Shown piece by piece: positions 1,810 through 62,914 of a DNA stretch of 64,000 nt. A program made the position numbers and the translations under genes. Every line of letters starts with the position of its first letter. Position 1 is the stretch's first letter. The DNA is from Pecten maximus. Lineage: Eukaryota. The notes beneath the pieces were generated by a model. That model did no database searches. It was not told the origin of the DNA and saw only the letters and a list, made by a program, of their open reading frames with translations. Location of the stretch: assembly GCF_902652985.1 (NCBI RefSeq), contig NC_047033.1, forward strand, positions 32,240,001 to 32,304,000, given 5' to 3'.

Positions 1810-2400
1810 GTAGTCGAGAGGCAGATATCGCAGTTCTTTTCCACGTGGGACATAAAACAAAGCTGAGAGATTTGAACAAAAAGCTGAAAATATATCTTTC
1901 AAACTTATTTGCGAAAGCAAAAATTAGCCCAGATATGCTTCGCGTGGCACTGGTCAATTACGGTACAACGGCCAACGTGCTGTTTGATTTTAATGCACAT
2001 AGCAGAAAACCCCAGGTTCGAAGCGCAATCAAAACCACCATCAAAGGTAACTTACGGAAAAGTCGAGCAAATTTAGGCGAAGCTTTAAGCAAGATAAGGA
2101 CAGGTTTATTTGTGCCTGGCGCAGGGTCTCGGATAGACGAAGGAGTCCCTGCGGGTCTCATCATAGTTACCGACATGGTGTCCTCAAATGATGGATTTGA
2201 CTTTGAGCAGGAAATGACGTCACTAAAACAAATGGGTGTGGCGGTGTTTGGAGTCGGCATTGGTTCGAGCGACGTTCATGACGAGTTACGGCAGTTGACC
2301 TCAGATCCGACAAGCGATTATTTCCAAGCCTTTCAGACTTTTGGCGATTTGTTAACGGATGCTGCCCCGGTTAAAAATATAGTCAGTCGGGTGAGAGCTA
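1810..2400 (+). CDS. Exon: VWA1, Lys/Arg-rich, MIDAS degenerate (ADIAVLFHVGHK)
   Basis: tttacag| acceptor, A|gtaagt donor, 591 nt, phase 1-1; RVALVNYG, IIVTD and VFGVGIG motifs. Confidence 0.88.
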
Positions 2401-5400
2401 GTAAGTAATTTTACTTCCGGTTTTCCGCTCGGAGGTCAGCGGTGAGCTTAGAGTAGAATTAAAGTATAAATAAAGAGGGCTCTGGTAAGATAGATAATAT
2501 TGCTGTCTGGTAAACTAAAATGGCATAATTATTTTAATCATTTATCATTTCTATATTCAGGTGAAAGGTATAAGATGATAGGATTAAAAAAATTGATTAC
2601 CATGATTTTAAGATGCTAATTGATTAGGTAAATCCTAGAATAGTGGATAGTTGTCATATTGTAATTCAGGGGAGCACATTGTGTACTATTGGTTCATTAT
2701 ATTGTAATTCAGGGGAGCACATTGTGTACTATTGGTTCATTATATTGAAGTAAAAAAAAATCAGTTGTTAAATTATTCAGTTATAGAAAAATATAGAATA
2801 ATTATCAATAAAGAACAGTTTTTTTTTGGAAAACATTTTTAAAATGGAGAGTGTGAGGTATCAGATATAGATATACGATGTTTAGGACTATTGGTAGTGT
2901 GGGGTATCAGATATAGATATACGATGTTTAGGACTATTGGTAGTGTGGGGTATCAGATATAGATATACGATGTTTAGGACTATTGGTAGTGTGGGGTATC
3001 AGATATAGATATACAATGTTTAGGACTATTGGTAGTTTGGGGTATCAGATATAGATATACAATGTTTAGGACTATTGGTAGTGTGGGGTATCAGATATAG
3101 ATATACGATGTTTAGGACTATTGGTAGTGTGGGGTATCAGATATAGATATACGATGTTTAGGACTATTGGTAGTGTGGGGTATCAGATATAGAGGATATA
3201 CAATGTTTAGGACTATTGGTAGTTTGGGGTATCAGATATAGATATACAATGTTTAGGACTATTGGTAGTGTGGGGTATCAGATATAGATATACAATGTTT
3301 AGGACTATTGGTAGTGTGGGGTATCAGATATAGATATACGATGTTTAGGACTATTGGTAGTGTGGGGTATCAGATATAGATATACGATGTTTAGGACTAT
3401 TGGTAGTGTGGGGTATCAGATATAGATATACGATATTTAGGACTATTGGTAGTGTGGGGTATCAGATATAGATATACGATGTTTAGGACTATTGGTAGTG
3501 TGTGGTATCAGATATAGATATACAATGTTTAAGACTATTGGTAGTGTGGGGTATCAGATATAGATATACGATGTTTAGGACTATTGGTAGTGTGGGGTAT
3601 CAGATATAGATATACGATGTTTAGGACTATTGGTAGTGTAGGGTATCAGATATAGATATACGATGTTTAGGACTATTGGTAGTGTGGGGTATCAGATATA
3701 GATATACGATGTTTAGGACTATTGGTAGTGTGGGGTATCAGATATAGATATACGATGTTTAGGACTATTGGTAGTGTGGGGTATCAGATATAGATATACG
3801 ATGTTTAGGACTATTGGTAGTGTGGGGTATCAGATATAGATATACGATGTTTAGGACTATTGGTAGTGTGGGGTATCAGATATAGAGGATATACAATGTT
3901 TAGGACTATTGGTAGTGTGAGGTATCAGATATAGATATACGATGTTTAGGACTATTGGTAGTGTGGGGTATCAGATATAGAGGATATACGATGTTTAGGA
4001 CTATTGGTAGTGTGGGGTATCAGATATAGAGGATATACGATGTTTAGGACTATTGGTAGTGTGGGGTATCAGATATAGATATACGATGTTTAGGACTATT
4101 GGTAGTGTGTGGTATCAGATAAAGATATACGATGTTTAGGACTATTGGTAGTGTGGGGTATCAGATATAGATATACGATGTTTAGGACTATTGGTAGTGT
4201 GAGGTATCAGATATAGATATACGATGTTTAGGACTATTGGTAGTGTGGGGTATCAGATATAGATATACGATGTTTAGGACTATTGGTAGTGTGAGGGTAT
4301 CAGATATAGATATACGATGTTTAGGACTATTGGTAGTGTGGGGTATCAGATATAGATATACGATGTTTAGGACTATTGGTAGTGTGGGGTATCAGATATA
4401 GATATACGATGTTTAGGACTATTGGTAGTGTGGGGTATCAGATATAGATATACGATGTTTAGGACTATTGGTAGTGTGAGGTATCAGATATAGATATACG
4501 ATGTTTAGGACTATTGGTAGTGTGGGGTATCAGATATAGATATACGATGTTTAGGACTATTGGTAGTGTGGGGTATCAGATATAGATATACGATGTTTAG
4601 GACTATTGGTAGTGTGAGGGTATCAGATATAGATATACGATGTTTAGGACTATTGGTAGTGTGGGGTATCAGATATAGATATACGATGTTTAGGACTATT
4701 GGTAGTGTGGGGTATCAGATATAGATATACGATGTTTAGGACTATTGGTAGTGTGGGTTATCAGATATAGATATACAATGTTTAGGACTATTGGTAGTGT
4801 GGGGTATCAGATATAGATATACAATGTTTAGGACTATTGGTAGTGTGGGGTATCAGATATAGATATACGATGTTTAGGACTATTGGTAGTGTAGGGTATC
4901 AGATATAGAGGATATACGATGTTTAGGACTATTGGTAGTGTGGGGTATCTGATACGGAGTGCAAGGTATAGTCTTATTGCTATATATGGTATAAGTATGT
5001 TAGAAAATACCAAATCCATATTTGTAACTACATACACACCTTGTAAATAGTGGGAGGAAAATTTAAACGTCAACCCCCGACTACGGCCCCAGCTCTAAGC
5101 AGTAAGTAAAGCTACGCATGCGCAAAAATTTTAACAACACAAGACCCAGTGTTGTATGCACGGCATTTTCCCGTCGGTTTATGTTACCTGTAATTTCAGT
5201 CATTTGCTTTTTTATTTTGTTGACATGCGTTAATGATTTGTTCTCTCTCTGGTTTACACTGTAAATAATGTTCACCTCATCAGATGCATGGGAATATGTG
5301 CACGATATTGAAATATCTTTGTAGTAATGGATCTATTATTTCTCTGATCAAGACCATACTCATATCCGATATAAATAGGAAAATAACAATAATGGTAATC

Positions 5401-8400
5401 CTTTGTAACTATATACGGAATAAACAATATCGCTATCACTTACTACGACACATGGGATAATACATATACTCGTTAATACCCGGTTACTTTACACTGCATA
5501 CATGATCACATACATAATCGTTAAGACTAGGGGATACTTTATATAATTGATAATGCATTGTTACTATATATTGGGTAACATGTTTCATTACAAATACTTT
5601 GTTACTTTATAGGGGATAACACATGATTGTCAATACCCTGTTACTTTATATTTGATAATATATATACTCGTTAATTCCTTGTTACTATATAGGGGACAAT
5701 ACACATTATCATGATTAATTGTTACTATATAGGGAAAAACAATCGTCGTTAACACATTGTTACTATATAGGGAATAACAAACGTCGTTAACACATTGTTA
5801 CTATATAGGGAATAACAAACGTCGTTAACACATTGTTACTATATAGGGAATAACAAACGTCGTTAACACATTGTTACTATATAGGGAATAACAAACGTCG
5901 TTAACACATTGTTACTATATAGGGAATAACAAACGTCGTTAACACATTGTTATATATATAGGGAATAACAAACGTCGTTAACACATTGTTACTATATAGG
6001 GAATAACAAACGTCGTTAACACATTGTTACTATATAGGGAATAACAAACGTCGTTAACACATTGTTACTATATAGGGAATAACAAACGTCGTTAACACAT
6101 TGTTACTATATAGGGAATAACAAACGTCGTTAACACATTGTTACTATATAGGGAATAACAAAGTCGTTAACACATTGTTACTATATAGGGAATAACAAAC
6201 GTCGTTTACACATTGTTACTATATAGGGAATAACAGACGTCGTTAACACATTGTTACTATATAGGGAATAACAAACGTCGTTAACACATTGTTACTATAT
6301 AGGGTATAACAAACGTCGTTAACATATTGTTACTATATAGGGAATAACAAACGTCGTTAACACATTGTTACTATATAGGGTATAACAAACGTCGTTAACA
6401 TATTGTTACTATATAGGGAATAACAAACGTCGTTAACACATTGTTACTATATAGGGAATAACACACGTCGTTAACACACTGTTACTATATAGGGAATAAC
6501 AAACGTCGTTAACACATTGTTACTATATAGGGAATAACAAACGTCGTTAACATATTGTTACTATATAGGGAATAACAAACGTCGTTAACATATTGTTACT
6601 ATATACAGGGAATAACAAACGTCGTTAACACATTGTTACTATATAGGGAATAACAAACGTCGTTAACACATTGTTACTATATAGGGAATAACACACGTCG
6701 TTAACACACTGTTACTATATAGGGAATAACAAACGTCGTTAACATATTGTTACTATATAGGGAATAACAAACGTCGTTAACATATTGTTATTATATAGGG
6801 AATAACAAACGTCGTTAACACATTGTTACTATATAGGGAATAACAAACGTCGTTAACACATTGTTACTATATAGGGAATAACACACGTCGTTAACACACT
6901 GTTACTATATAGGGAATAACAAACGTCGTTAACACATTGTTACTATATAGGGAATAACAAACGTCGTTAACATATTGTTACTATATAGGGAATAACAAAC
7001 GTCGTTAACACATTGTTACTATATAGGGAATAACACAGGTCGTTAACACACTGTTACTATATAGGGAATAACAAACGTCGTTAACACATTGTTACTATAT
7101 AGGGAATAACAAACGTCGTTAACATATTGTTACTATATAGGGAATAACAAACGTCGTTAACATATTGTTACTATATAGGGAATAACAAACGTCGTTAACA
7201 CATTGTTACTATATAGGGAATAACACACGTCGTTAACACACTGTTACTATATAGGGAATAACAAACGTCGTTAACACATTGTTACTATATAGGGAATAAC
7301 AAACGTCGTTAACATATTGTTACTATATAGGGAATAACAAACGTCGTTAACATATTGTTACTGTATAGGGAATAACAAACGTCGTTAACATATTGTTACT
7401 ATATAGGGAATAACAAACGTCGTTAACATATTGTTACTATATACAGGGAATAACAAACGTCGTTAACACATTGTTACTATATAGGGAATAACAAACGTCG
7501 TTAACACATTGTTACTATATAGGGAATAACAAACGTCGTTAACACATGTTACTATAGAGGGAAGGGAAGGTTATCAATAATCTGAAACAACAAATTATAT
7601 TTTAATCATGTTTCTTCACGAAGCACTCACGGTGTTAGTTCTCCTTGTTATCACGGGTTTTGTTTTGTCCAGTTCGTATCCAGTCTATCTGTTGAATGTA
7701 TATTTTCCACACAAGGAATATTAACAAACTTTAGAATCACACACGTTAATTTACATTCAGGGTTACTTTCACTTTCCATACATTAAAATACATTTCACCT
7801 GACAACTTATAGGTTTCTTAGCTTTTAAAGGGATCGTTAACTCGCCCAAGTATACCTGTGGGTACTATAACTTGGAATGGTTATGAGATATATTGCTATA
7901 TAACATTTTGTTGTTCTGTGCCATTACTATCCAGAATTGTTCAAATTGTAGGTCTTTGTATATCTTTTAATTCCTCTCCAAATCTAATTTACGACTTCAT
8001 AGGAATTACTCTGGGTATGCCTCGTTTCTTTTTTATCATGTCGTATGACGTCATAAAGTGGCATGGCGTATATGCTGTATGACGTCATGACGTGTTAATG
8101 TCATACCCTGTTTTCTAGATATAACTCGATACTCAGTGATAAGGCATTAAGACGAAAACTGTCACCGAATACAAAATATACTTTTATAGTCATCGGTTAA
8201 AATTATATTTTTATTTATACAGTCATCGGTTCAAATGTTTTATTAACCTCTATAGTCATCGGTTAAAATGTTTTATTAACCTATAGTCAGCGGTTAAAAT
8301 GTTTTATTAACCTCTGTAGTCAGCGGTTAAAATGGTTGTATTATTTCTGTAGTCAGCGGTTAAAATGATTTTATTGTTTCTATAGTCATCGGTTAAAATG

Positions 8401-11400
8401 ATTTTATTATTTCTATAGTCAGCGGTTAAAATGATTTTCTTATTTCTATAGTCAGCGGATAAAATTATTTTATTATATCTATAATCATCGGTTAAAATGA
8501 TTTATTAACCTCTATAGTCAGCGGTTAAAATTATTTATTAACCTTTGTAGTCAGCGTTGAAAATGATTTTATTATTTCTGTAGTCAGCGGATAACATGAT
8601 TTTATTATTTCTGTAGTCAGCGGATAACATGATTTTATTATTTCTGTAGTCAGCGGATAAAATGATTTTATTATTTCTATAGTCAGCGGATAAAATAATT
8701 TATTATTTCTATAGTCAGCGGTTTAAATGATTGCTGTTCTATAATGTTGAAAACACATACATACATATCTAAACACTGCATCAGTTTTAAATCTATGTCA
8801 AATTCGTTTCATTCTGATGACGTATATGGAAATATTTTCATTCCTACACTTTGCCTTGTATATTGATTCGTGTTCTGTTATTGTTCATTTTGTTTTTATC
8901 TATGTTGTGCAGATTGCTTTTTGTCATATGTATCACGTGAGCATGACACAAATTGCATGCATAAAAACAAAACCAAATTATCACTTAATCAAAACAAATG
9001 GGTAAAATGGAAATTTTGTTTCAGAATATAGAAAATTTCAAATTGCCCTAGTTTTCCGTTCTGGATTAACAACCTCTCCCAGTGACTACTATACTCATCT
9101 TCTCCCATTCATGGCGAGATTTCTGGAAGAGAAATTCATTCAGAAAATCGATATTGAAATAGCATTGATAAACTATGGGGCCGCAGTAAATCAACTGTTT
9201 GGATTCAAAGAAATCAGCAGTTTGGAAGAAATGCAGACAATAATTTTAACCGCACCAGACAAACTGCAGTCAAAGTTTGCGAGATTTGGAGATGTCCTTC
9301 AACATCTCGATTTGCGTATTTTCAACAACGTGTCCAGTGATACATCCAAACACGTAATATTTATTACGGACAAAGTCTACGATAATCTGAACTTGAAAGT
9401 GAAAAACGGGTTAATAAGGTTAAAAAGGAAAGGGATAAAATATCATTGGGTGCTGATTGGTGGAGAAAGCAATGTGAGTACCCCGGGGGATACATACCTT
9501 ATAAACGACTACCCGAGTCTCACTCACAACTATGACGTCATAGATGATATCACAACAGACATTGCTCTCGGTGAGTATTATTTCTGTTTTTTTTATTGGT
9601 CCATTTTGTTGCGAAGGATTGACATAGATATAATATGTTAAGTAATCAAAGAAAATTGTGGAGTTTGACATTTTGAATTTAATTTTAGTTTATGCATTTA
9701 TTGTGGATGTGTTTTTTTTGACAAGAATAAACATTATTATTTTAGATACGATAACTATAAAATGCATTATATAAACGAATATTTTCATATTTAAATTTTA
9801 TTCCTTTGCAGATGATAGTGAATATTCTGAAGCCTTGGTACCAAAGACAATTCCAAGTGAAACAGGAACACTGCAAAGTATGTATGTTTAATAAACATAT
9901 CAATATATCAGTCTATATCTGTAAGAGCAAAATAAATCAGTTTAGCCTCTAGCGAAGCTGATTAGATACGACAGCTATTCTGGTGATATTTTAGGGGCCC
10001 TTTAATCTGCTATATAATTAATGATTAACAGTACTCACACATAGAGTATCTGTTGTCACCTGTTTTGGTCATTCTACTGTAGTATACACTTATAGCGTCT
10101 GACATCACAAATGATAAGGTCACTCTGACGTCACACATATCTTCCGTCATTGGAATGTCTCATTTGTGAAAATGTATAACATACTATTCGAAGTTCGCGT
10201 GCTATATATGATATAAACAAGAAGATTGATTTCCCGATCAAGTATTAGACCGATAGTATAATCCAGGTCTATTTTTTCTAGACTTCACATAGCTTATTAT
10301 ATATATAATTTGTCACATAGCTTGTTATATAGATAATTTGTCACATAGCTTGTTATATAGATAATTTGTCACATAGCTTGTTATATAGATAATTTGTCAC
10401 ATAGCTTGTTATATAGATAATTTGTCACATAGCTTTTATATAGATAATTTGTCATCCTCCTAAAAGTGCATCAAATCAATGACCACTTAAATAGTGACCT
10501 AATGATTTATTTGTGTGCTACATTCACCCGTGTATCATTTCAGACTCACAACAAACAAAGATCATCATAGCGTTTCGTTCTGGAAGTTCTACCTCGCCTC
10601 CAGAGTTCTTCAAAAAGCTGTTGCCTTTCATTAATTCATTCATCGATAGAAACGTTCTGTCCGAAGCCAACACAGACATCGCTGTAGTGAACTATGGGAA
10701 AGCTGTTAATCTAGTCTTCGGATTCCAACAGTTGAGCTTTGATGAGATGATGGACGCTGTGAGCGGAATAACAAAAAAGTACAGGAGTAAATTCTCGCGT
10801 TTTCCGTTGGTCATTGAATACATAAACCAGGAGATGTTGGTGCCACCGGCGGTAGCAGATACAGACGTCAGACATGTGATATTCATCGCAGATCAGCTTT
10901 ATGAGAAGTTAGATTCTGGTATTAGGAAGGGAATAGAACATTTAGAGACTAGGGGTATCCACACACATTGGGTACTTATAGGCGATAACAGTGCTATACC
11001 TACCACCAGTGTAGCCTATAAGGTGGCAGACTATGAGGAACTACGCATGCGTCAAGATATATCAGTTCAGATCCTTTCTGATATCACACAAGGTAGGATA
11101 TTAACTCTCCTACTATCTATTGGTTGTGTCGCCCTTGTAGGTGTACACGATGTCTCTGTCAACCCTTCTTTATCATTGACATTTGACTATGTCACCCGTG
11201 AAAAATCATTGCATTTTACACATACCTCATTTTCCTATCAGTATTTTTGGATTTGTTTATCCATCTGTACATATACTTAAGATAATAATTGTCATTTCAC
11301 CGTATTATATACACACATTATTTATTCGATTGCAGGAAAGAGTTATGCAAAGGACGTCAATGGAATCCCAACGCAACCGGAAGTGATGACACTAGCACCA

Positions 11401-14400: not shown

Positions 14401-17400
14401 ATCGGCTAAAACCAATCATAATGTTTTCAATCGAAATAGATGTTTAGAATGACGTGTTAACTCACTTTAACATAATGCACATTTCTTAGCCGAGATACAA
14501 TTATAAATTTAGAGGACACTTGTCTGTAGGAATGGAATCAATTCAATGGTCGTGTTTTCTGTTTCCTCTTCCCTGTAATTATCGTTGAAGTGATGTGTTA
14601 TGAGTATAGTAATCAGATTAAACGATGTCGTCGACAGGACAAACAACACCTCGAGTTCCATCAACGGAAGCAACAAAAACAACGGAAACCACAACAAGAT
14701 CCTCACTGCCTGACAATTCATCGAGTAGTGCAGACGTAGGTACGTGTACTTGTTAGTAACTGCAGTCAGGGGAATAACTTTACCAATGGTAAGCGCCTTT
14801 GTTCTACCTACTCGTTCCATTCATCACTGTTTCCCTAAAAAAATCCAAGTAAACTTTATGCGCAAATTAATCAAACACATATTGTTTCCGCAATGTTGCT
14901 ATTGGCTTTGATTTTTTTTTAAATATTATATCATTGTATGTATCCAACGAAATGATGAAAAATAAAATACTGGGTATTTATCACGATAATCACCTGTAAA
15001 TTTCCAAAAAAAAAAACAAAAAAAACGCATAGACATAATTATTTATTGACTATGGAAAAAAAAGTATACCATTTCTTTACTTTTCAAATCTTGAAATCGA
15101 ATTTAATAAATGCATTTCATCAATACGTGAAAACAAATCCATTTGAATATATATTGTATGCACGTAGAAACGTTGAAAAAATATAATTTAGTGGCATTTT
15201 CAGTATTGGAGGCATAGGTGCTATATTGACTGCAATGTCTATCTGGCCTTCATTTTAGAAATTTGTTATTTGAAGCAATTACCTTTTCTCTGATTTCTAT
15301 TGTCATAAGATGGTTACCGTCCAATGTCGAACACGTACTTGTTTTATTTTTATAACTGGCAGTGTCTTGTTTTACAGATTCATCACTGGCAGACATTGCC
15401 TTCCTTTTCCATGCATCGAATAAACTGTCAAAGAAAGTGTTTAAGAAAGGATATATAAAGTTCTTGCTTAGAATGATTAAAAAGTGTAAGCTGGACAAGG
15501 GTAACGTGAAAACAGCTCTCGCCACGTACGGAAATAAAGGACAGCTTCTGTTTAATCTCAACACCTTTTCCCAGAAGAAACCTGCCATGAAGTTCATACG
15601 AAAACTTCCAAAGAATCTTCGTTTTAAAAAGGCAGATTTAGCAAGCGGCTTGCGTCTTGTCAGAGAACAGGTATTTGTGGATCCATTTGATAGACCAAGA
15701 GCCCCAAACTATCTGGTTGTAGTGACAGACAGTCCATCTGATGACGGCATCGATGAGGTTCTTGTAGAAACAGAACTACTTAAGGATCAGGGTGTGTACG
15801 TTTATATGTTATCAATAGGAGACATTGGGGAAGAAATGATAATTGTACCCAGTGAACCTGCTGCAGAAAACTCTAAACAACTATCAGCTTATACGGATCT
15901 GGCAAACTTCAAGAAATCAGGAAAATCAATCATGAATAAGATACCAGCACGTGAGTACTGACTTTATCACCACATTTGCCACTTAATAATGTCAATTTCC
16001 AGAAATAATTAAATTGTTCTACTGTACTGATTCATTATTGATATGGATTGATTAGAATACACAAATCGCACTCGAATGAATAGTTTACTAACATAATTCG
16101 CTCTGAATGGTTACGAAGAAATTCAATTTGATTATATGCAGTTGACTTTTTTTTTCCACAACAGCGACATTTTCAGACACATAACAGCGATCTACAGTAT
16201 TACCCACGTGATAATGTTAATATAGAGATTACCCAACGAGTGTTTGTTGTTTATGGACTTTATTTCATCCGAGTAAGTTGTTTTTTAATGCCAGAAAAGA
16301 CACGAGCTTTAGCGAGTGTCTTTTGTAACTTTTAAAAAATAAATTACGAGTGTGAAATAAATTCCATATCCAACAATCAGGAGTCGTGTGACCTGTTAAT
16401 ACCACAATAATATCGGCTTGAATCAAAGGGAAACGTGACCAAGTCTTATTTTGCGTATGCAATATGGTGCACCGGTGACGGCCGGGACCCGGTGATGTGA
16501 CGTCATTCGATTATTGATGGCGTCAATAACAATTGCAGCTCGGATCAAAGTTCGAATTCTTGACCAATCAGAAGACCGGAAGGATATCTTCCACTAGTTG
16601 AATATAACACATATATATATTCAACAAACGGCACATCTATACAATTAACTGAGAGTGGAATAACACAGCGTATTGTGGTAGAAACGTTCATATTTCATCT
16701 TATACCATTACCATGGAATTATACAGCGGCTATCATGTTATGATTATGGTTAAATGACATATGGAATGTATGCACTGGAATGTTTTAAGACTCCTAGACA
16801 GTAATTGAATCGACAGCTGTTTGTCTAAACAATAATCTTATGAACATTGAAAAGTTTAATTGAGTACACTTCACACCTCAATGTTAAAATGCAGGCTTTG
16901 CTACTAAAGTCTATTTAAATTCTTACTTACGCGAAAAATGTTTCAAACATTTCAATACAAATGAAATATTGTTGAATTAATCTTTTTGTAATATCAATTG
17001 TATTATGTATTCATTAAACAGATGCAAACGCAAATTTCTTGGACATAACCCCAAGCAAGAAATCGCCTAATAAAACTCCCGCGTAATTAACCACGTTTAC
17101 AGTAGTTACCTTGTAATCTATATATCACCGGATGTAAATCAAGACATGGTGGGAATACGTCTCTTAAAATGCTCTGTTTCCTTTTCAGTTAAACTTCAGA
17201 AAAAGAAAAAAGGAGGAAAGAAAAAGAAGACTACAACAATACCAACAAGTACAAGCACTACCCTGACATCAACACTTCAGTCAACAAGTATGACGCCAGC
17301 AGATATAACTACCATATTTACTGTGCCATTAGACAAAACATCAACGGACATAATGACAACTACTGAATCAATTCTGACGGCAACTAATCTAAACCGTACG

Positions 17401-20400
17401 ACGGAAAGTTTCATGGTGACGTCGCCTTCAGCTTTAGACACAACTGAAGCGCTGATATCGACAACTAGAGAAGATGATACCACAGAAGGTGAAAGGGTGA
17501 CGTCACCATCGCATTCAGTCACAACTAAATCACTGACGTCGACAGATGGAGAACATACGTCAACGACAATCAAAATGACGTCACCATCTGATGATGTAAT
17601 AACGACCGATGCAACACTTTTAATAACCGAACCAAAGCAATCTACAGAAAGGGCCATAGTAACGTCAACACCGGATTCCGACACAGTAGAAACAACAATG
17701 TCAGCACCTACGACAGCAAAATCTACGGAAGTATCTATGACGACTTCATCAGAGGAGTCTGACATGTCAACAACACAGCTTTCAACAAAGTTAACTTATA
17801 CACAAAGTACACAAACAACACTACGAACAACACCGGTTACAGTAGTAACATCCAAGGCCCCATTAGTCTCGACTAGGTTTAGTTCGGCATCTTTACCTGA
17901 GCGTGTTACATCATCTAGCGACATAGCTCCCGTCAAAACATTAGGTACGACAACGTCACGATCTGAGACTTGGACCACTAGGGGTTACTTCACTACGACG
18001 AAAGCTCCAAAATCCACGATAGGACGTGAGGGGGACACTATCAACGGAATGAATACAACAAATGGACAAACAAGAGCGATAACGGAGTCTACAACATTAG
18101 GGGATCAACACATAGTGTCGACAGAGAGACGGATGTCAACATCAGATTCATATGTTATGCCGACAGTTGAAATTATAACCGATGAATCAACAGATACGGA
18201 AGTGGAATCGTCCATTACAACCTCTCCAACACGATACACGGAAATCATGACACCTGTGGTAAACAAAGTGTCAACAGAAGCTGTCGGTATGTCGTGTCTC
18301 TTTGAATGAGGAATGGATGCATGATCCCGAAATATAGACAAACCAATATTTACTATAGGAAGAGTACCATCCCTGGTATGAACATTGACGATTCTCTAGT
18401 CAAACTGAAATTGCAATGTTAGACTTTTCTGTTAGATAATTTATTTGCTCTTAAAGGAAGTGTGAAAGTATATATCTTATATAGAACGAACGCTTGGTAT
18501 GAACAATTCATATAATCATCCAGCATTCTATGCAATGAACACATTCTAGCTTCGTTTCTATTTCAATCATAAACCAACTTAGCCCTCCATGCAATGAAAC
18601 CAATATAGCTTCATCTCCATTTCTATCATAAAAAGTGACTACGAAATCATGTTTAGCATGTAGCATAATGACAATCTTGAGGATTCCTTATTTCATAGTA
18701 ATTTTGAATTATCACCAACAAGGAAAGTTTACCGATATGCTAAGCGTTTTTTCGTAGTCCGTTGCTATGGTGTGTGTATACAAATTGCATTATCGAAACC
18801 CGCTTGAATGACATACGTTAGATATATTTCAGAAATCAAAGAACTTTTTATTTATCATTTAAACCTGCATACTTCACAGCATATATGAAATACGATATAG
18901 TGATGTTAAAATATGCATAATGATGTTAATTTTGATGATGACTTAATTACAGATTTTATTTATTTAGATGACTTTATTTACAGTTTACAATTGTATATTG
19001 GCATTTCTAGGGATTTTGTATTTTTATTGATAAAAATGGCACGTGAGTACAATATTTTGTGATACTGTTTTTTGTTAATTCATGTTTTCATGTTTTATAG
19101 TGCCTAAGTGCACTCATTGATATTTGTTTTCATCTGTTTACTCATTATCAGTATACGTCATTTTCAAATACTATACGTTTCTTCAATGTGTTGGTTTTAT
19201 TCGTATATTTGTCACTTCCTGTTACATGTATGTTGCTTGCAAATGTGACAAATGTTGCTCCTGACTGTGTCTTGCAAATTTTAAAACCTTCGTTAATGCA
19301 CCACGTCTGTCCTTTTGTCTGCATGTCATTTTCTTTTCAAAGCTGTGTTCAATATACGTGAAATATGAGCTCCGTTGTAGGTACCGAGTAATCATATTAC
19401 TCTGTTCTAAATGCTACAATCACAACACAATTGCAAAATTGGTATGAACTGTAGGATGATAAATTATTATATATTTTTGTTTCATTAATTAAATATGTTA
19501 TAAAGATCGATTTTGATATAGTATTAGAGTTACTTAAAAGATACGATTTTGTGAATAGTATTTTGATCTTCATAACCTATACTACTCACCTTGAGATTTA
19601 TCAATGAGTATTATGTGAGATTTATCAATGAGTATTATGTGTATATTTAATTTCTGAAATTAACGGCAGGTAAGAATACGTAAATTTCAAATAAGTTTAC
19701 TTCTTGGGATTCTATATCGATGGGTTAATTGTTAAACTATATCTTCATGAATCAGTAATTTACAATGATGTTGAAAACATATTAATTCCACTGAATTTAA
19801 ACATAGATAATGCATTCAGAAACAACATAAGATGAAATACATAAACATATTATGTTTATGACTAATATTCTGTTCTTCTGTTATATTTTAGCTACTGTAG
19901 CACCGATGTCCTTATCAGGTAAGCGTCTGCCAAAATAATATATTTCCAAATAATTCCAAAATCTATCCTCAAACGGTGAATCAATCCTATTACAATAGCG
20001 AGTGCTGATATCTAAGCTAAATACTTACATGTATAACTAGCCTGATACTGAAATATGTTCTCTGTCCATTTACTTTGCAACGAGTTATCCCCCTTTGTAA
20101 GTATTTACCTGGTTACAGTGAGCGAGGAGGCTGACATAGTCATCGCTGTACACTCGTCCATCACCGCCACCCCGAGTCATTTCAACATTTTGCTGGAGTT
20201 CCTAGCTGAGTTGTACGAACAAGCTGATATAGACGGTGGCCGTGTCAAAGCCGGTGTCTTGTTTTACGGTTCTGCAGCCACGCCTATATTCTACCTTGAT
20301 CAGTAAGTCTACTGTGTTCTAAAATATCAGAAATGTTAAAAACATTTTGTTAATTCTCAACAAACCTTGATTCCAGTATAAGGAAATCATGTCTGGGGCT

Positions 20401-23400
20401 TTGCAAATCAATGAACACATGATTTAAGAGGCAATTTTAAAAATAGCTATTCGGTCCGAACGAGATACTTTATGTCACATTCAATTGGTAACACAAAATC
20501 TTACACTCGGATGAGTTATTGAGTTATTAATATAAATAAGAATTTTACCTTTCAGATATCTAATACAGACAGAAAAGTAATCTACTGGCCGTGATATGAG
20601 ATGAAACCGTATTCTATAATTGATTGCATACTAGATTGTTAATATAAATAAGTTTTTCATCATGTTCAGATTCAACAGTTGGGATGATGTCTTTGTAACA
20701 ATTTCACGGACAAGCAATGCTCTGCGAAGTAATGTAGTGGACGCCTCACGAGCCATGAAAAGGGCCTCTGACATGTTTGCTGCTGCAAGAGGAGGATCAA
20801 TCCCAAAGGCGCTTATTATGGTCACAGATGCGGCATCCAATGAAAACATTCTTATGATTCCCGCACGGAAAGAAGCATTGATAAATAATGGTGTCTCCAT
20901 CTACAGTGTGGGAATAGGGTTACCAGAGAAGGAGGAGCTGGAATCTCTAGCTAGTGCCAGCGAGAATGTTTTTAGTGTCATTGGTTATGACCAACTCCCT
21001 AGAGCTGCCCAAGACATCAAGCGAGAGATACGTTCATGTGAGTAATAGCATCGCCTCAACATAATTGATATGGACTGGGGGATAAGTGATGATAGTATTG
21101 TCATTTAAAAGAGTAATGTCAGGTTAAATTTGATGCCTATGCATAATTAACAATTAGCAAGCGGCTAACATAAGCAAATTATGCAAAGTTATAGATAAAT
21201 GAATACACTAAAAATCTGATAATCTGGAAAACACAAGCTTGGCAGACTTTGATGACTGTTCCTTTTCTGATAACGATCGATTGCCTCTCAAGGATTATGT
21301 TTAATTCGAAGTCGTAGTAGATTGTCTTTATTGTCCATTTTTCTATTTTAGTACAAACAATGCCGGAGCGTGTGACAGTTCCTCCAGTAACATCCACACC
21401 CAATCGTAAGTATATGGTACAGAATATCATACACAACACATCGAGATACAGTACTTATTAATAGTATAACAATACTAATACCTATATACAGAAATTATCA
21501 AGGGAGTTTACAGTTTGTCTGTACCCATTATAATGATGCAATTAGGATTCGACTAATTACGTGTTCAAGTAAGGTTGCTTTATTTATCTATACGTTCCTG
21601 ATAGAAACTCCTCGTGATTTTTCGAACAACGTAAAAGTTAGCTATCCCTGTTTGTTAAACAGTGTATTAGTGAGCAGTCACTGCTAAACATTATATCGTT
21701 GAGTTCTCCATGTTTGCTAGGGTTTGTATGGGTAAGCTGTCCCTGTTGGTTGGTAGGGGTAGTGAGATGTCCCTATTTGTGTTAGAAATATTGTGATGTC
21801 CCTGTTTGTGTTAGAGATAGAGTGATGTCCCTGTTTGAAACATTTTGAAGTGAGTATTGAGGTATGTTACAGCCATCAAAGAAATATCATTGGCTTCAGT
21901 GATTGTTCTTTAAGTATATATGATACACATATTGTAAAATTGTCAATTTTACGTGATCACAGTAGATAAGTTAGATGTATTTGAAGGACTTCGCAAGGTC
22001 TCCATACAATGCTACATGTGGTGTATCTTCGATTAATTCCGTCCTCTTTAAAATCTGAATGCAGTCTGCGTAGAGGCGGTTTGGTGTTTTGAAGATCTTG
22101 TCATTCAAACAAACAACGGTATTGCCAGAAATTCAATTAAAGCGGGATTAAATCATCTCAGGGATATAACTACTGGATTCATATCTTGATGGTCTTTATA
22201 TTGTATTGCTACTATTATATAAATATGTATGTAAAAAGCGGTTTTAACAAGGAGTGATCTCTCTTTAGCTGCTGAACCGGTGGAGAAGACCACGTCGCCA
22301 ACCAGTTCGTCAGGTAAGCGTTTTACTCACACCGTCTGTTGTTTCATTATTAGGTCAATACAAGACCACGTGTTCCCGTCATGCACCTTAGTGCTTCCGC
22401 TTTATTAGACCTTTTATACTACCGAGTAGTTAACAATAAGTTACATATATCAACTAGCGGTTTTGGGAATAAGTAGATGCATCATATATATCACCATTTT
22501 AGATAGCGTACGAGGCAAGGTGTTCATAACCAAAATATCAAGTCTCAAAATGTACTGTAATATAACTGTTCACAACTATATAACCAAATAATCAATCCTT
22601 AAGGGCATTCATTCGAGATAATGGTTTGCGTGAATGAATAAGATGTCTCATTGTTAGAATTAAGGTGTCACAGTTTAAGATATTGATCAATATTCATACG
22701 GATATTGTAAGCGAAAGGTCGATTTAATTTGTATCCATCCGATATAAACTATAGCTGGTTAGAGGTTTTAAATCTAGAAAGAATAATGATCACATTCCGT
22801 GACTTTGCTTGTTCATCCAATTTGTCCATCCGCTACATAACTGCATATTAACGTTTTGATATTCCATCGATCGCTATGTTCGTTTTCACATTTTTACATA
22901 CTTTTTCGAATTGGGTGACTCTTGAATTCTTTTATTTTATTTAAATTATTAGTAATCTTAATAAGAAATTGATCATTTGAATTCAAATTCATTTCTAGAT
23001 GAAATATAACGATTTTGAAAATAATGATGGCCATTTTAGTAATATTGGGGCCACGAAATGGAACTGATACATATTTTCGATATTATCCTGTAGTTTGTAT
23101 ATACAATTTCATTATAGAAATCAAGATGTTACCTGCGTTTTAGTATATTGTAGAAAGTTAAACGTTACAATAAACACGCTGGCTGCCTTTATCTATATAA
23201 TAATAAACCCATGTCTTTCGTCCGTGCTTCCGGCAATTCCTTTGTATTACAGAGCCAATACGTATTACGTTTCCACCTGCGGGCGGAGGTAAGTAACTGT
23301 TTTGTATATCTTAATTAGCCTCTTGATCAATTAGACGTAAATGAGTTTGTATCACTGAGAGGAGTGTTTTCCCTTTAAAAAGGTAAGTGGTTTATGCCTC

Positions 23401-32400: not shown

Positions 32401-35400
32401 TTGGTGTACTGATACATACATTTATGACCACGGAACACGCTTGACTCTGAACATGTAATAAGACCAGAAGACGGGGAAGACGTAATATTTTAATTCCATA
32501 CCGGAAAAAAGCAACATAAGCGACAAATGCTGATTTTAGATTGTCATCAACAGATCATATCAATGAACGAACTGATAAGTCGTCATATATTGTACACAGA
32601 CCAATGACATCAACAGATCATATCAATGAACGAACTGATAAGTCGTCATATATTGTACACAGACCAATGACATCAACAGATCATATCAATGAACGAAATG
32701 ATAAGTCGTCATATATTGTACACAGACCAATGACATCAACAGATCATATCAATGAACGAACTGATAAGTTGTGATATATTGTACACAGACCAATGACATC
32801 AACAGATCATATCAATGAACGAACTGATAAGTCGTCATATATTGTACACAGACCAATGACATCAACAGATCATATCAATGAACGAACTGATAAGTCGTCA
32901 TATATTGTACACAGACCAATGACATCAACAGATCATATCAATGAACGAACTGATAAGTCGTCATATATTGTACACAGACCAATGACATCAACAGATCACA
33001 TCAATAACGAATTGATAAGTCGTCATATATTGTACACAGACCAATGACATCAACAGATCATATCAATGAACGAACTGATAAGTCGTCATATATTGTACAC
33101 AGACCAATGACATCAACAGATCATATCAATGAACGAACTGATAAGTCGTCATATATTGTACACAGACCAATGACATCAACAGATCATATCAATAAACGAA
33201 CTGATAAGTCGTCATATATTGTACACAGACCAATGACATCAACAGATCATATCAATGAACGAAATGATAAGTCGTCATATATTGTACACAGACCAATGAC
33301 ATCAACAGATCATATCAATGAACGAACTGATAAGTCGTCATATATTGTACACAGACCAATGACATCAACAGATCATATCAATGAACGAACTGATAAGTCG
33401 TCATATATTGTACACAGACCAATGACATCAACAGATCATATCAATGAACGAACTGATAAGTCGTCATATATTGTACACAGACCAATGACATCAACAGATC
33501 ATATCAATGAACGAACTGATAAGTCGTCATATATTGTACACAGACCAGTGACATATTTCGAAAAGAGACAATCAATTTTATTTTAAGCAAGACTTGGATA
33601 CGCCACATAATGTTTTTGTGTATACCACTTCCCTTTCAGATATCCCTGCTCCTCCTCCGCACTCGGTGGAGTTAGGTGAGTCGGTTACGGGGTCTACCAG
33701 GTTCATGTTAATTAAATCATAAACACGAATGGAAGATCTCATATATTCCACATGCAATCCACGATTGGAAAAGTTGAGATATTTATTCCAATAAAAATTA
33801 TGAGGTATCTGATACATAGTTTTATAGAAATAGATATATTTTTTAAAGTTAATTAAGAAAATATTCACAATTCAATCATATTTGATAAAAAAACGTTCGC
33901 TGCATCTGGCGCATATATTAAGCGAGAGCGATAAAATAGCATTTGATTCGCAATATTGTTGCATGCTGCTAGGTATTTATTTGCAAATCATTGCCTGCAT
34001 TTTAGCGTGCAAGTCGCTGCGACAGGATATAGTCTTCATCCTTGATTCGTCCACAAGCGTCGGGAAAAGGAACTTTCAGAAAATGCTGAATTTTACAAAA
34101 GATTTTCTGCTGGCTGCTGACATTGATTCCGGTAGTGTCCGTGTTGGACTGATAACCTATAGTACCTCGGTCACTATTCACTTTTACCTGAACACGTTTA
34201 GCACGAAAGCAGAGGTATTCTCCGCCATTGATGACGTATTATATCAAGCAGGGAGTACCAATACAGCTGATGCCCTTAAAACTCTAACTGCCGACATGTT
34301 TACTCAAGGTCATGGTGACCGTGACGATGTCCCGAGCGTCGTAGTGGTAGTCACAGATGGGGTGTCAAACATCAATATGCGGCAGACCATCCCAAGAGCA
34401 GACGAAGCGCGATTATCTGGCATAGCAATATACGCAATAGGTATTGGCATTAAAGAAACAGCAGAGCTTCAAGGAATAGCAAATACTCCGACTGAAGATT
34501 TCCTTTATACCATTGAAGACTTCACAGAGCTGGACCAAGTAAAGGAGACGTTGTTTGAATCTTTCTGCCTCGGTAACATTATTTCTATAGTTGGAATGAC
34601 GGTTTAAACACTTCTACTGACGCTTACGCTTCTGTCCCAAACTCGTCTCATCCTGCAGTATCCATTTTTGTGTTGCGAGGACATTGTACGACCTTCTAAT
34701 TTTGCTTTTTTAAGCTTTTTACGGTGATGTTATGAGTTTTGTCTTTTCTATCTGCTAACTGCGTTTTGTAATAATTACGTTTGATCTCTCTATTTCTTTA
34801 TCATCTGCTCTAACACCAACGTCTAGTCTCTCTCCGTCTTTGTTGGGATTATATACATTGTGTACTACCCAATACTCATGAATCGTTTTCTCTTGTAGTT
34901 ATTTTATCAATTGAAATTGATGTAGTCGCCATTGAATTAAAATATCCTCTTGGCTGATAATTGAATACACGTTTTCTAGTTTAGTTAGTTTAGTTTACAT
35001 ACTATAAATATTTGGTGGAGTCTCCTTTGGTGTGAATGTTTCTATTACATATCATAATAAGCATGGAACTGAAGTCTGTTGTATCTTACATTGTAGTAGT
35101 TGAATACAAATCAGGGAGAAGTTTCTGTTTGACGAAATACAGAAACCATGAGGTGCCTTATCGTGAAAGTAATATAACAGTAACAAACTATAACCGAACC
35201 AATTTTATTTGTTTCAGAAGAACCTAAACCGACCCGTGGTATTTCTTGTGAGTAATAATATGAGAAATGTTATACATAAGTCAGATATGTTTAAATATTA
35301 CATATCATAATATATATCATTTCGTCAGAATCTTCAGTGATAAAAGAAACAATGATAAATGATGGAATTACCTATGAATACCAAACGTTTATTGTTCATA

Positions 35401-56400: not shown

Positions 56401-59400
56401 ACAATGCATCACGTGATGTTTACATCAGACCACGGCGACCGCCCTGATGCGGAAAACATTTGTATCATTTTAACAGACGGAGTATCAAACATTGACCACA
56501 CCCTCACCATCCCGGAAGCGAATTCAGCCAAAGACAGTGGCATTCGAATATACGCCATTGGAATTGGCCTCCTTGAAACCGAAGAACTGGACGGAATCGC
56601 CAGCCTGCCAACAGGAGAACATAGCTTTAACGTGGACGATTTCAGTGAGCTGGATAATCTCCATGACGCGGTGTTTGAATCAACATGCGAGGGTAAACTG
56701 CACACATAAATCTAACACGGGTTAAACATAATACTGCACTCTCTGATATTCTTTCTATGCGGTACTGATCGGTAAAAAGGGAGCTTTGAAGATTTGTATC
56801 CGTTTCCATTTTGTCTGATTTCTTTTCTTACATGGTTGTGGTATTTTGATTTTCTTGACATTTGGCCTCTGGTTGTGGCAGTAATGCGTAAAGGGAGATT
56901 TACAATTGTTTATTAATTAATTGTAATCCACGTTTACCTGATACGATATCTTGTCTTAATTGGCACCAACCATTAACATAATATTTGTGGTTATCGGTCT
57001 GTTTTATTTAACTTTATTTGCGTAATTTCCCAACAATCTGAATATGATTTGTTCCTTTACTAACATGTAACATTCATCATCAATTATAATCATTATTGCC
57101 CAATCGAGGCATTGATCTGAGATTGAGCATGATGTTATATGTAATAGCTATTTTACAAATTAAACATTAGCATTTGGCCTATAAACTGACCATAACTAAG
57201 CATTTGAGAAGGATTCAATTTCAAGTTGATAACCATGATGTTTCTGAGCTAAATTTGTTAATTTCCCGATGAGATATAGAGATATGTCATTCGTCATGTT
57301 CACTGGTCGACGCCAGAATTCAGTCTTATTGATAACATGGAATTCATAATGACATGAAAGTATGCAGTATTCTATTCTTGTGATTTATAACGATCTCCTC
57401 CATATTACAGTGATCACACTCCCGCCGACAACCACACCTCAAGGTGAGAATTTAAAATACTAGTGAAGGTCTAGTTTTAAAATTACCCGGTAAATAAACT
57501 TCCATACCCCAGTAGTAATTCACGATAAACATACCTTAAATCATGGTTCACTAAATACCAATGAGGGATGTTAAGTGAAATTCGACCTTATGACATAATG
57601 TTGACGGAAACTGATTATTCAGTTGAATTCGTCTTGAAAACGTGTTAAGCATTGCTTTGTTTATTTGGTATCAAAGCAAACATTGATGAAATTTACACTT
57701 GACTAATACGAAATGATTTTATTTTATAGTGTTTTAATGTCATTTCTGTTCTTATTTTCAAGTGTGCAATGCCGCAAGACAGGATATCGTTTTCATCATT
57801 GATATGTCTACAAGTGTCGGTTTTGATAACTTTGATAAAATTCTAGAATTCTTAGAACACTTTTTGTTACATGATGATATCGATAACGGTATAGTACGTG
57901 TAGGTGTAGTTGGGTATAGCACCGATGCCAAAGTGGAGTTTCATTTAGATGAATATTCAACGACTGCATCACTATACAAGGGTATCAATAATATCAAATA
58001 TATGCTCGGGAATACCAACACCGCCGCGGGCCTTAAGCTCATGAGAACGACGATGTTCACTGTTGAACACGGGGACAGATTGGATGCGGAGAACATTGCT
58101 ATCATAATTACTGATGGAGTTTCAAACGTGAACTCACGACAGACATTACCGGAAGCAAGAACAGCGAGAAACTCCGGAATAAAGATATACGCAATTGGTG
58201 TTGGTTTGATTGAAACAACGGAGTTGCAAGGGATAGCATCACTCCCATTAGAGGAACATTTATTTCTTGCTGACGATTTCTCCGAACTCAACAGTCTAAA
58301 AACTAAAATATTTGAAGGTCAGTGTCCAGAGACCACGCCAACGCCCAAACCTACGACACCGTTACCAACGACATTAGCGCCAACCACGCCACCTATTGGT
58401 AGTATTGCACTCAAATACTGATTACTTAACAATGCATTATTGGTGCTTAATTATAATATTAATGGTTTATTAACGTTTTCATGACAGGTGATGGGTCCAT
58501 GTTGTCTTTTTCGTTTATTAAGTCTTTGATTGATGGAGTGATTGTTTTTGTCATATACTTAAAGATTGATACATGTTCCTATTCAGCGTTTTAATAGTTT
58601 AGGGGTTGCTTGGTGATACAGAATGCTCTAATAACATCCACGCCACAATGTATTGAGCACTTCATAATCGAGTTTTAATAGCGATGTGTCATTGAACTCA
58701 TTTAACTAATTTCCATCGTTCCGTCGTCAAGTGTATCTAGTGTCAAAACAAATCCTTTGATTCAACAATTCGATGGCTATTATCCTAATATCGTTAGGTG
58801 TTTGGGCATATTATTATTATCTCACTAACATTTTATCTGTAATACTTATAGTAAATATCGATTATCAATTTGTGAAAATGAATTTAAACATATATCTGCT
58901 TAATTCGATTTGATGTGAAGCTTAAGGAAAATAACAAAACAAATATAAAGCATTATCGGTTGCAATTGTTTTTTTTTTAATATGCTTTATTCAATGAACG
59001 TAAAGTAGTGACATTCTGTATTCGTCGTAACTTTAAATTGACTTTATTGTATTAAGTGGCCTTTATAGAAACAACACATTTTGTTGTCTATATATGTATC
59101 AGGTAAGTATTTTACGTCGTTGATAATTCAGGAAACGATTCCCTTCATAATTCGGATTATTTGTAAAAGTATCACTAATCTATTGGTTTCGAATCATAGC
59201 CAGTTCGATCGGAATATATTCGGAATGTGCTTGAATTTATTATATTTCCCCAACTTTCATCAACATGCAGGCATACAACAATATATTCTATGTAACATAA
59301 CATAGAATGGGCATTATTAATTGTTTGTCCTTTGTTCGTTTCTTCCTAAGTATGTCACGGAACCAGACAGGATATAGTGTTCATACTAGACATGTCCACC

Positions 59401-62914: not shown

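Follow-up and report, generated by a model that had tools for sequence, protein, structure and literature searches.

The window, a stretch of 64,000 nucleotides of king scallop (Pecten maximus) DNA analysed here, is probably the middle of one ~243-kb gene for a secreted, beads-on-a-string matrix or adhesion protein that makes use of subsets of 76 VWA units. Domain content, exon phases, splice junctions, orthology and purifying selection are demonstrated below, and the length and bead composition of the protein appear to be set by in-frame skipping. Giant VWA-EGF proteins are already known from automatic annotation of molluscs; this locus stands out by its potential for 76 units and by an in-frame skip of 113.7 kb that is documented in transcripts. 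Positions are those of the window, with a minus sign upstream of it and a plus sign downstream.

Extent of the gene and its orthologues

Flanks of 100 kb upstream and 179 kb downstream, the latter reaching the contig end, were taken for gene extent (343 kb in total), and searched with a VWA profile built from the window. Between positions -25918 and +211827, 76 VWA units were found, all on the + strand: 3 upstream of the window, 30 inside, 36 more to +164 kb, and 7 C-terminal. The preliminary description, with its 30 VWA domains, had therefore undersized the gene. It was correct in seeing neither gene end inside the window: a putative signal-peptide exon, coding for a Met followed by a hydrophobic stretch, was found at -31317, 31.3 kb upstream, and the stop codon at +211827, 147.8 kb downstream of the window. 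The region from -100 kb to -32 kb consists mostly of long tandem repeats, open in several frames on both strands, and no gene with long exons was obvious there.

Ten divergent VWA domains without MIDAS stand near the N-terminal side of the whole gene, followed by a long MIDAS-bearing run. A unit of ~4.8 kb with two VWA exons is repeated in tandem ~17 times between +70.6 kb and +147.5 kb, its copies being 92-99% identical at the protein level. Of the two exons of this unit, one carries the full MIDAS motif, and DSS.. and TGND stand in the other; a frameshift breaks the copy at +146827 to +147454. The gene tail, outside the window, is [VWA-EGF]x4-VWA, with four EGF modules interspersed between split VWA domains. 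Read from end to end, the protein would be laid out as a signal peptide, ten MIDAS-less VWA domains plus the mucin exon, an array of MIDAS VWA domains with linkers, the ~17 two-domain units, and this tail.

In RefSeq, the 3′ two-thirds of the gene correspond to LOC117317678, whose isoforms X1 and X2 (XP_033728440.1 and XP_033728441.1, 2,917 and 2,887 aa) map to the window and its chromosome at 100% identity. Both run from VWA20-25 to +166.4 kb and then to the stop at +211827, with 13 VWA and 4 EGF domains. The 5′ part is unannotated or fragmented, and the LOC117317678 model is truncated at its 5′ side. No Pecten transcript or model joins the part from the signal peptide to VWA19 with LOC117317678; its 5′ continuity is read from orthologues, from the shared phase and from the lack of intervening starts and stops, and LOC117317678 and the RefSeq fragments form, in all likelihood, one giant gene.

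The Mizuhopecten yessoensis orthologue, LOC110464458 isoform X7 (XP_021375359.1, 6,558 aa, 28 VWA), gave a tblastn chain on the Pecten DNA from -31317 to +211827 that was collinear throughout. The chain starts at the putative signal peptide, whose exon is 87% identical to the X7 N-terminus, and passes through the 3 upstream VWA, VWA1-6, the mucin exon, the VWA7 pair and VWA8-11, then continues from +66.7 kb onward. Isoform X7 thereby takes in parts of the block that is skipped in Pecten transcripts (see below), and has the same C-terminus. In Argopecten irradians, VWA13-29 have one-to-one collinear counterparts with 73-90% amino-acid identity and dN/dS values of 0.02-0.11, dS being saturated; judged from these ratios, the VWA13-29 range is under purifying selection. 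Between Pecten and Argopecten the introns are not conserved, whereas short islands between the VWA exons are, and a 10,274-residue gene call covers the Argopecten locus. The preliminary view of a single gene rather than a cluster is borne out by the X7 collinearity from signal peptide to C-terminus, by the one-to-one Argopecten matches, and by an RNA contig across VWA22-25.

The gene is a member of a giant VWA-EGF family, being collinear with X7 along its whole length and having the putative signal peptide, VWA array, [VWA-EGF]n and VWA. Family relatives were fetched from Gigantopelta, Babylonia, Batillaria, Haliotis, Pinctada, Solemya, Argonauta, Mya and Ruditapes, so that gastropods, bivalves and a cephalopod are represented. 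Gigantopelta aegis LOC121387240 is predicted to have 7,308 aa and 35 VWA domains, and fish col6a3 predictions reach 33. The rarity formerly seen in comparison with the 12 VWA domains of human collagen VI alpha-3 was thus overstated, and the novelty then attributed to the architecture is not supported, since orthologues of the same layout are already auto-annotated across molluscs. With an amphioxus giant protein as query, chordate and cnidarian giants and, among bivalves, only Solemya were recovered, and no scallop. No papers citing the scallop loci or protein accessions were found.

Domains, linkers and repeats of the window

Stop-free + strand stretches of at least 110 codons were scanned singly against Pfam, all searches being made exon by exon. 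PF00092 was matched by 29 of the 33 open stretches scanned (best E 1.4e-45), and also by the stretch following the assembly gap (VWA15) and by the first half of VWA7. The 30 VWA domains initially reported are thus confirmed; they all lie on the + strand, each in a single exon apart from the split VWA7, whose two parts at 20052-20303 and 20635-21042, as first delimited, cover Pfam profile positions 1-57 and 75-169. With a curated PF00092 cut-off of 23.8 bits, VWA15 scored 149 bits, the VWA7 halves 25.5 and 34.2, and VWA3 28.7. The MIDAS motif DxSxS..T..D is present in VWA8-30 and absent from VWA1-7. VWA2-5 form a divergent clade in which FRSG or FRTG replaces the DxSxS of MIDAS.

The exons mapped for RefSeq isoform X1, beginning with the VWA20-21 linker and ending with the one at +171.8 kb, are multiples of 3 and all in phase 1-1, each mapped exon having two bases of a split codon at its start and one at its end. 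The VWA exons among them measure 567 nt, and the linkers 30, 63, 120, 33, 63, 36, 39, 117, 150 and 75 nt. Nearly all remaining single-exon VWAs have a predicted phase 1-1 AG..GT pair of 555-600 nt. The rule of phase 1-1 and multiple-of-3 length proposed at the outset holds for every exon verifiable on the RefSeq X1 map. Position 1810 is a candidate acceptor, and 62914 a candidate donor.

Linker islands were considered as supported when conserved with Argopecten or Mizuhopecten and bordered by AG..GT in phase 1-1. By this means, or by exact RefSeq exons or RNA junctions, 18 of the 26 linker exons of the preliminary description were supported. Linkers in conserved islands encode mostly Pro/Thr-rich peptides, and these Pro/Thr-rich linkers would probably be O-glycosylated. 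The mucin exon also stands, as a Ser/Thr-rich 411-codon open stretch (17074-18306) collinear with the Mizuhopecten orthologue. No Pfam family was found in this stretch, nor were gel-forming mucin families (VWD, C8, TIL, cystine knot) found by Pfam in RefSeq X1 or in window stretches of at least 110 aa. The features are the following; X7 stands for the Mizuhopecten isoform.

1810..2400 (+): VWA1 exon, without MIDAS; predicted, phase 1-1; Pfam E 3.4e-25; 88% identical to X7 residues 663-858
9006-9638, 10498-11277, 12103-12702, 13554-14228 (+): VWA2-VWA5, single-exon, 'FRSG' type without MIDAS; open stretches, 74-83% identical to X7 and collinear with it
9812-9877 (+): linker after VWA2, phase 1-1 candidate
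14638..14751 (+): Pro/Thr/Ser-rich linker that follows VWA5 and precedes VWA6, with a firm acceptor and candidate donors at 14724-14751; X7 residues 1721-1753
15363..15950 (+): VWA6 exon, without MIDAS; predicted, 83% identical to X7
17189..18290 (+): mucin-like Ser/Thr-rich exon of ~370 codons, from translation, ends approximate; X7 residues 1944-2361, 35% identity
19892-19918 (+): 27-nt candidate linker before VWA7
within 20052-20303 and 20635-21037 (+): VWA7, two exons, by Pfam; X7 residues 2353-2554
21352..21405 (+): 54-nt linker after VWA7, phase 1-1, GTAAGT donor; X7 residues 2558-2580
starts near 24830, 26504, 27387, 29634, 31291, block to 31848 (+): VWA8-VWA12, single-exon, full MIDAS, by Pfam; VWA8-11 77-88% identical to X7 and collinear
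29160-29213 (+): linker in the VWA8-12 block
32545..33554 (no strand): minisatellite of 63-bp period with 16 copies, 98% identical; partly open in one frame
33640-33675 (+): 36-nt linker before VWA13, phase 1-1 candidate
34006-34572, 36119-36685 (+): VWA13 and VWA14, 567 nt each; 78% and 82% identical to Argopecten, dN/dS 0.10 and 0.07
38185-38751, 39472-40038, 40922-41491 (+): VWA15, VWA16 and VWA17, candidate exons; an Argopecten RefSeq fragment maps at 78-86%
39072-39137, 40297-40323 (+): linkers flanking VWA16, conserved islands
43108-43674, 44369-44935, 46192-46758, 47454-48020 (+): VWA18, VWA19, VWA20 and VWA21; RefSeq X1 exons exact from VWA20 on
42666-42761, 43946-43975, 45675-45782, 47031-47060 (+): linkers amid VWA18-21
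48623-49189, 49757-50323, 50958-51524, 52103-52669 (+): VWA22, VWA23, VWA24 and VWA25, exact map of XP_033728440.1
48248-48310, 49453-49572, 50550-50582, 51857-51919 (+): linkers amid VWA22-25, exact map of XP_033728440.1
55039..55249 (no strand): 211-bp MITE with ~46-bp inverted ends, in an intron
55695..55724 (+): 30-nt Pro/Thr linker before VWA26, phase 1-1 AG..GT; 80% identical Argopecten island in an unconserved intron
starts near 56126, 57763, 59348, 60920, 62324, end 62914 (+): VWA26-VWA30, by Pfam; start of the 41-unit skipped block
57411-57443 (+): linker between VWA26 and VWA27

The VWA18-19 segment (43095-44940) is a tandem copy of the VWA20-21 segment (46179-48025), with 97.3% identity over 1,848 bp; Argopecten has one copy only. 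Both the false start of the RefSeq model (46179) and a fragment model of 232 aa on VWA19 fall at this duplication. Antisense open frames of 181 and 213 codons lie on the - strand opposite VWA19 and VWA21 (44304-44846 and 47389-48027), and are probably a by-product of codon composition. In VWA27-30, Pro/Thr tails are encoded inside the same exon. The Argopecten orthologues of VWA26-28 are 77-88% identical by codon alignment, with dN/dS of 0.02-0.10.

In the AT-rich window, a single stretch of 164 N occupies 38015-38178. The complete 567-nt, phase 1-1 VWA15 exon, which covers Pfam positions 1-172 of 174 and aligns with its Argopecten orthologue from the first base, comes directly after an AG at 38183-38184. 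The assembly gap is intronic, 6 nt upstream of this exon, so that continuity of the coding frame across the gap is not at issue; a short linker exon may be hidden in it. Minisatellites crowd the introns (1-896, 2850-4954, 5718-7563, 8185-8732, 28609-29147, 37603-37866 and 41778-42174); their periods measure 22-50 bp, their copy numbers go up to 48, and their copies are 84-99% identical. The intronic 37603-37866 array, of 37-bp period, is located ~150 bp upstream of the gap. The 63-bp minisatellite is probably intronic too. We considered 32545-33554 as a coding domain and rejected it, as it gave only repeat-driven, sub-threshold Pfam matches and no orthologue match. The MITE had 1,515 candidate copies in a first look at the genome, the best at 99-100% identity, and its word depth was in the thousands in RNA runs X1 and X3; it is a very young, high-copy element whose copies are carried in many transcripts. 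No Rfam families were found in the window.

Transcripts and in-frame skipping

The RNA data were assembled contigs placed on 51481-57480, from which isoform levels are not readable; at the other candidate boundary, 21042-24802, continuity was judged from the orthologue. Junctions 51524/51857 and 51919/52103 were present in spliced contigs of runs X1 and X11, which confirms the 63-nt linker between VWA24 and VWA25. A run X11 contig of 2,847 nt continues past 52669 with 605 nt that match nowhere in 51481-57480, and the first 30 letters of these match exactly at +166401 (position 32406401 of the genomic contig), the 36-nt linker preceding the VWA exon at +166700. The order fitting this contig is VWA22 (part), the 120-nt linker, VWA23, the 33-nt linker, VWA24, the 63-nt linker, VWA25, the 36-nt linker and the +166.7 kb VWA. 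The phase-1 donor of VWA25 (52669..52671) is thus joined in frame to +166401, 113.7 kb downstream, and 41 VWA units are skipped, namely VWA26-30 and 36 downstream. Junction 52669/+166401 is shared by the X11 contig and by RefSeq isoforms X1 and X2, its RNA side coming from one run. A chimera produced by word sharing is unlikely here, since VWA24-25 have no close paralogue in the 343 kb.

It had been proposed that almost any of the frame-symmetric modules could be skipped without a frameshift. They really are skipped, as seen with 52669/+166401 in RNA and RefSeq, and with Mizuhopecten isoforms that drop linkers or a VWA with its linker. At least 18 isoforms are predicted for LOC110464458, and the 8 that were compared (X11-X18) differ at 6 sites by one linker exon of 18-26 aa, or by 214 aa that comprise one VWA and its linker, these being automatic predictions in a repetitive array, where junctions between near-identical repeats may be mapping artefacts. 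The single protein of about 6,600 aa comprising all 30 domains, also proposed initially, is not supported, as the only documented Pecten transcripts omit VWA26-30.

A long in-frame skip is possible because all modules have phase 1 in common; such uniformity allows the spliceosome to join distant modules in frame, and the choice of blocks, which may be regulated, would set protein length and bead type. A search for base-pairing that could loop out the block, between the intron downstream of VWA25 (52670-56125) and the one preceding +166401, gave only matches of 10-15 nt, as expected by chance. In runs X2 and X3, some contigs run unspliced across 52669. A stop lies 3 codons past the unspliced VWA25 donor, with AATAAA/ATTAAA at 53371 and 53429 (within 52670..53450), and read-through into the VWA25 intron likewise terminates the RefSeq model XP_069108493.1 of Argopecten. 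A truncated read-through isoform with intronic polyadenylation after VWA25 is therefore possible.

More tentatively, the gene might be one transcription unit of 76 frame-symmetric VWA exons for a programmable matrix protein, in which a regulated choice at VWA25 between the linker at 55695 and the exon 113.7 kb away, in addition to cassette skipping of single beads and linkers, would fix how many metal-dependent adhesion beads, and of which type, are made in each tissue or life stage. If so, full inclusion would give ~17,000 aa, far more than in any recorded VWA protein, and would place the product with the largest secreted proteins.

We also considered, as a doubtful alternative, that a single mRNA constitutively contains all 30 VWA exons of the window together with the mucin exon and the linkers, the long skip being a minor isoform; extended to the whole gene, this would also yield ~17,000 aa. 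Such joining would fit the phase 1 of all modules, the strong purifying selection on VWA26-28, the presence before VWA26 of an Argopecten-conserved linker and of no conserved first exon, the inclusion of skipped-block units in Mizuhopecten X7, and the 10,274-residue Argopecten gene call. However, the spliced contig of run X11 had a depth of 22 while VWA26 coverage was nil in that run, and the skip is used by both Pecten RefSeq isoforms. In the other three runs VWA26 was covered by low-depth pieces, one of them unspliced across the donor. Among these contigs, no spliced read joined VWA25 to 55695 or to VWA26, and no spliced RNA was seen over the VWA26 part of 51481-57480.

The omission of the entire block from Pecten transcripts could alternatively mean that VWA26 to the +163 kb unit is a separate gene, nested with its own promoter in a 114-kb intron of LOC117317678. 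The Argopecten RefSeq model, which stops after VWA25, and the distinct DMSTS motif and same-exon Pro/Thr tails of VWA27-30 would agree with this, but we consider it improbable. Mizuhopecten X7 splices N-terminal exons to block units and then to the shared C-terminus, and the block keeps the same strand and the same phase throughout. In addition, comparison with Argopecten over 52.7-55.7 kb revealed no conserved first exon; the sole conserved island upstream of VWA26 is the phase 1-1 Pro/Thr linker, not a start exon.

Finally, a tandem cluster of several small VWA genes, in keeping with small RefSeq models, for example the 232-aa 'collagen alpha-1(XII) chain-like' XP_033728447.1 and, in Argopecten, models of 168-1,243 aa, is very improbable and largely refuted, because in both scallops the fragment models start inside domains or end by intron read-through, one RNA contig crosses four consecutive VWA exons and their linkers, neither signal-peptide exons nor stops are found between domains, and single orthologous models span the region.

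Relation to collagen VI, matrilins, bivalve VWA proteins and titin

The reading that we favour is a single gene whose VWA units are used in subsets. It corrects the local annotation, RefSeq fragments and a 5′-truncated model being replaced by one giant gene, and it means that a mollusc-wide, so far uncharacterised giant VWA-EGF family reaches 76 units in the king scallop. The protein would be extracellular, and its MIDAS domains may bind other components of the matrix in a metal-dependent way, as is the case for collagen VI and PTMP1. Taken together, the putative signal peptide, the MIDAS VWA domains, the Pro/Thr and mucin spacers, the EGF modules and the kinship with collagen VI and PTMP1 suggest that it is most likely a secreted, glycosylated, multivalent matrix or adhesive protein.

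The best PDB match was 9han chain C, collagen VI alpha-3, with E 9.6e-124 over many domains. The COL6A3 gene and the scallop gene both encode tandem VWA beads, N-terminal in COL6A3, and both show VWA exon skipping; for collagen VI alpha-3, an isoform without N-terminal VWA domains and skipping of VWA exons are known (PMC4316388). The scallop gene differs from COL6A3 in having no triple helix, in its Pro/Thr linkers, mucin exon and EGF modules, and in a far larger skip (41 units). No Gly-X-Y runs of at least 7 triplets were detected in the six frames of the 343 kb, and PF01391 is absent from RefSeq X1, so that the lack of a collagen helix, first noted for the window, extends to the whole locus. 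Without any Gly-X-Y helix, the protein does not qualify as a collagen VI chain. Neither a Kunitz nor an FN3 domain was found by Pfam in RefSeq X1. With matrilin, which combines VWA, EGF and a C-terminal coiled coil, the scallop protein shares VWA and EGF only. Its C-terminus coincides with the end of the last VWA exon, and it is not a matrilin because no room is left for a C-terminal coiled coil.

The second-best solved match was PTMP1, a collagen-binding protein of the mussel byssus (4cn8, E 3e-28). Bivalves have expanded VWA proteins without collagen helix that are found in nacre and shell proteomes (PMC5597905), and byssus-related vWFA proteins of scallop bear DxSxS and TDG motifs (PMC9168380). 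The bivalve VWA proteins, PTMP1 included, have 1 to a few VWA domains, and no tie of the Pecten gene to shell, byssus or any tissue was seen. The closest likeness is with the LOC110464458-type proteins, which have the same signal peptide, MIDAS-less VWA, mucin exon, MIDAS array and VWA-EGF tail; the scallop orthologues are 77-93% identical per domain to Pecten. The Pecten locus has 76 VWA units, against 28-35 in any predicted relative fetched, these relatives all being automatic predictions.

If the isoforms proved to be tissue-specific, the gene would offer a natural model for the tuning of a bivalve matrix or adhesive material by bead number and linker glycosylation. The I-band of titin is also built from frame-symmetric domain-exon arrays, in which very long in-frame skips set molecular length. 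Titin, made of Ig, FN3 and PEVK modules, is a muscle protein that stays inside the cell, and is to the scallop gene a working analogy without homology; with its concrete case of very long in-frame block skipping, the scallop gene would be an extracellular counterpart of titin-style length tuning.
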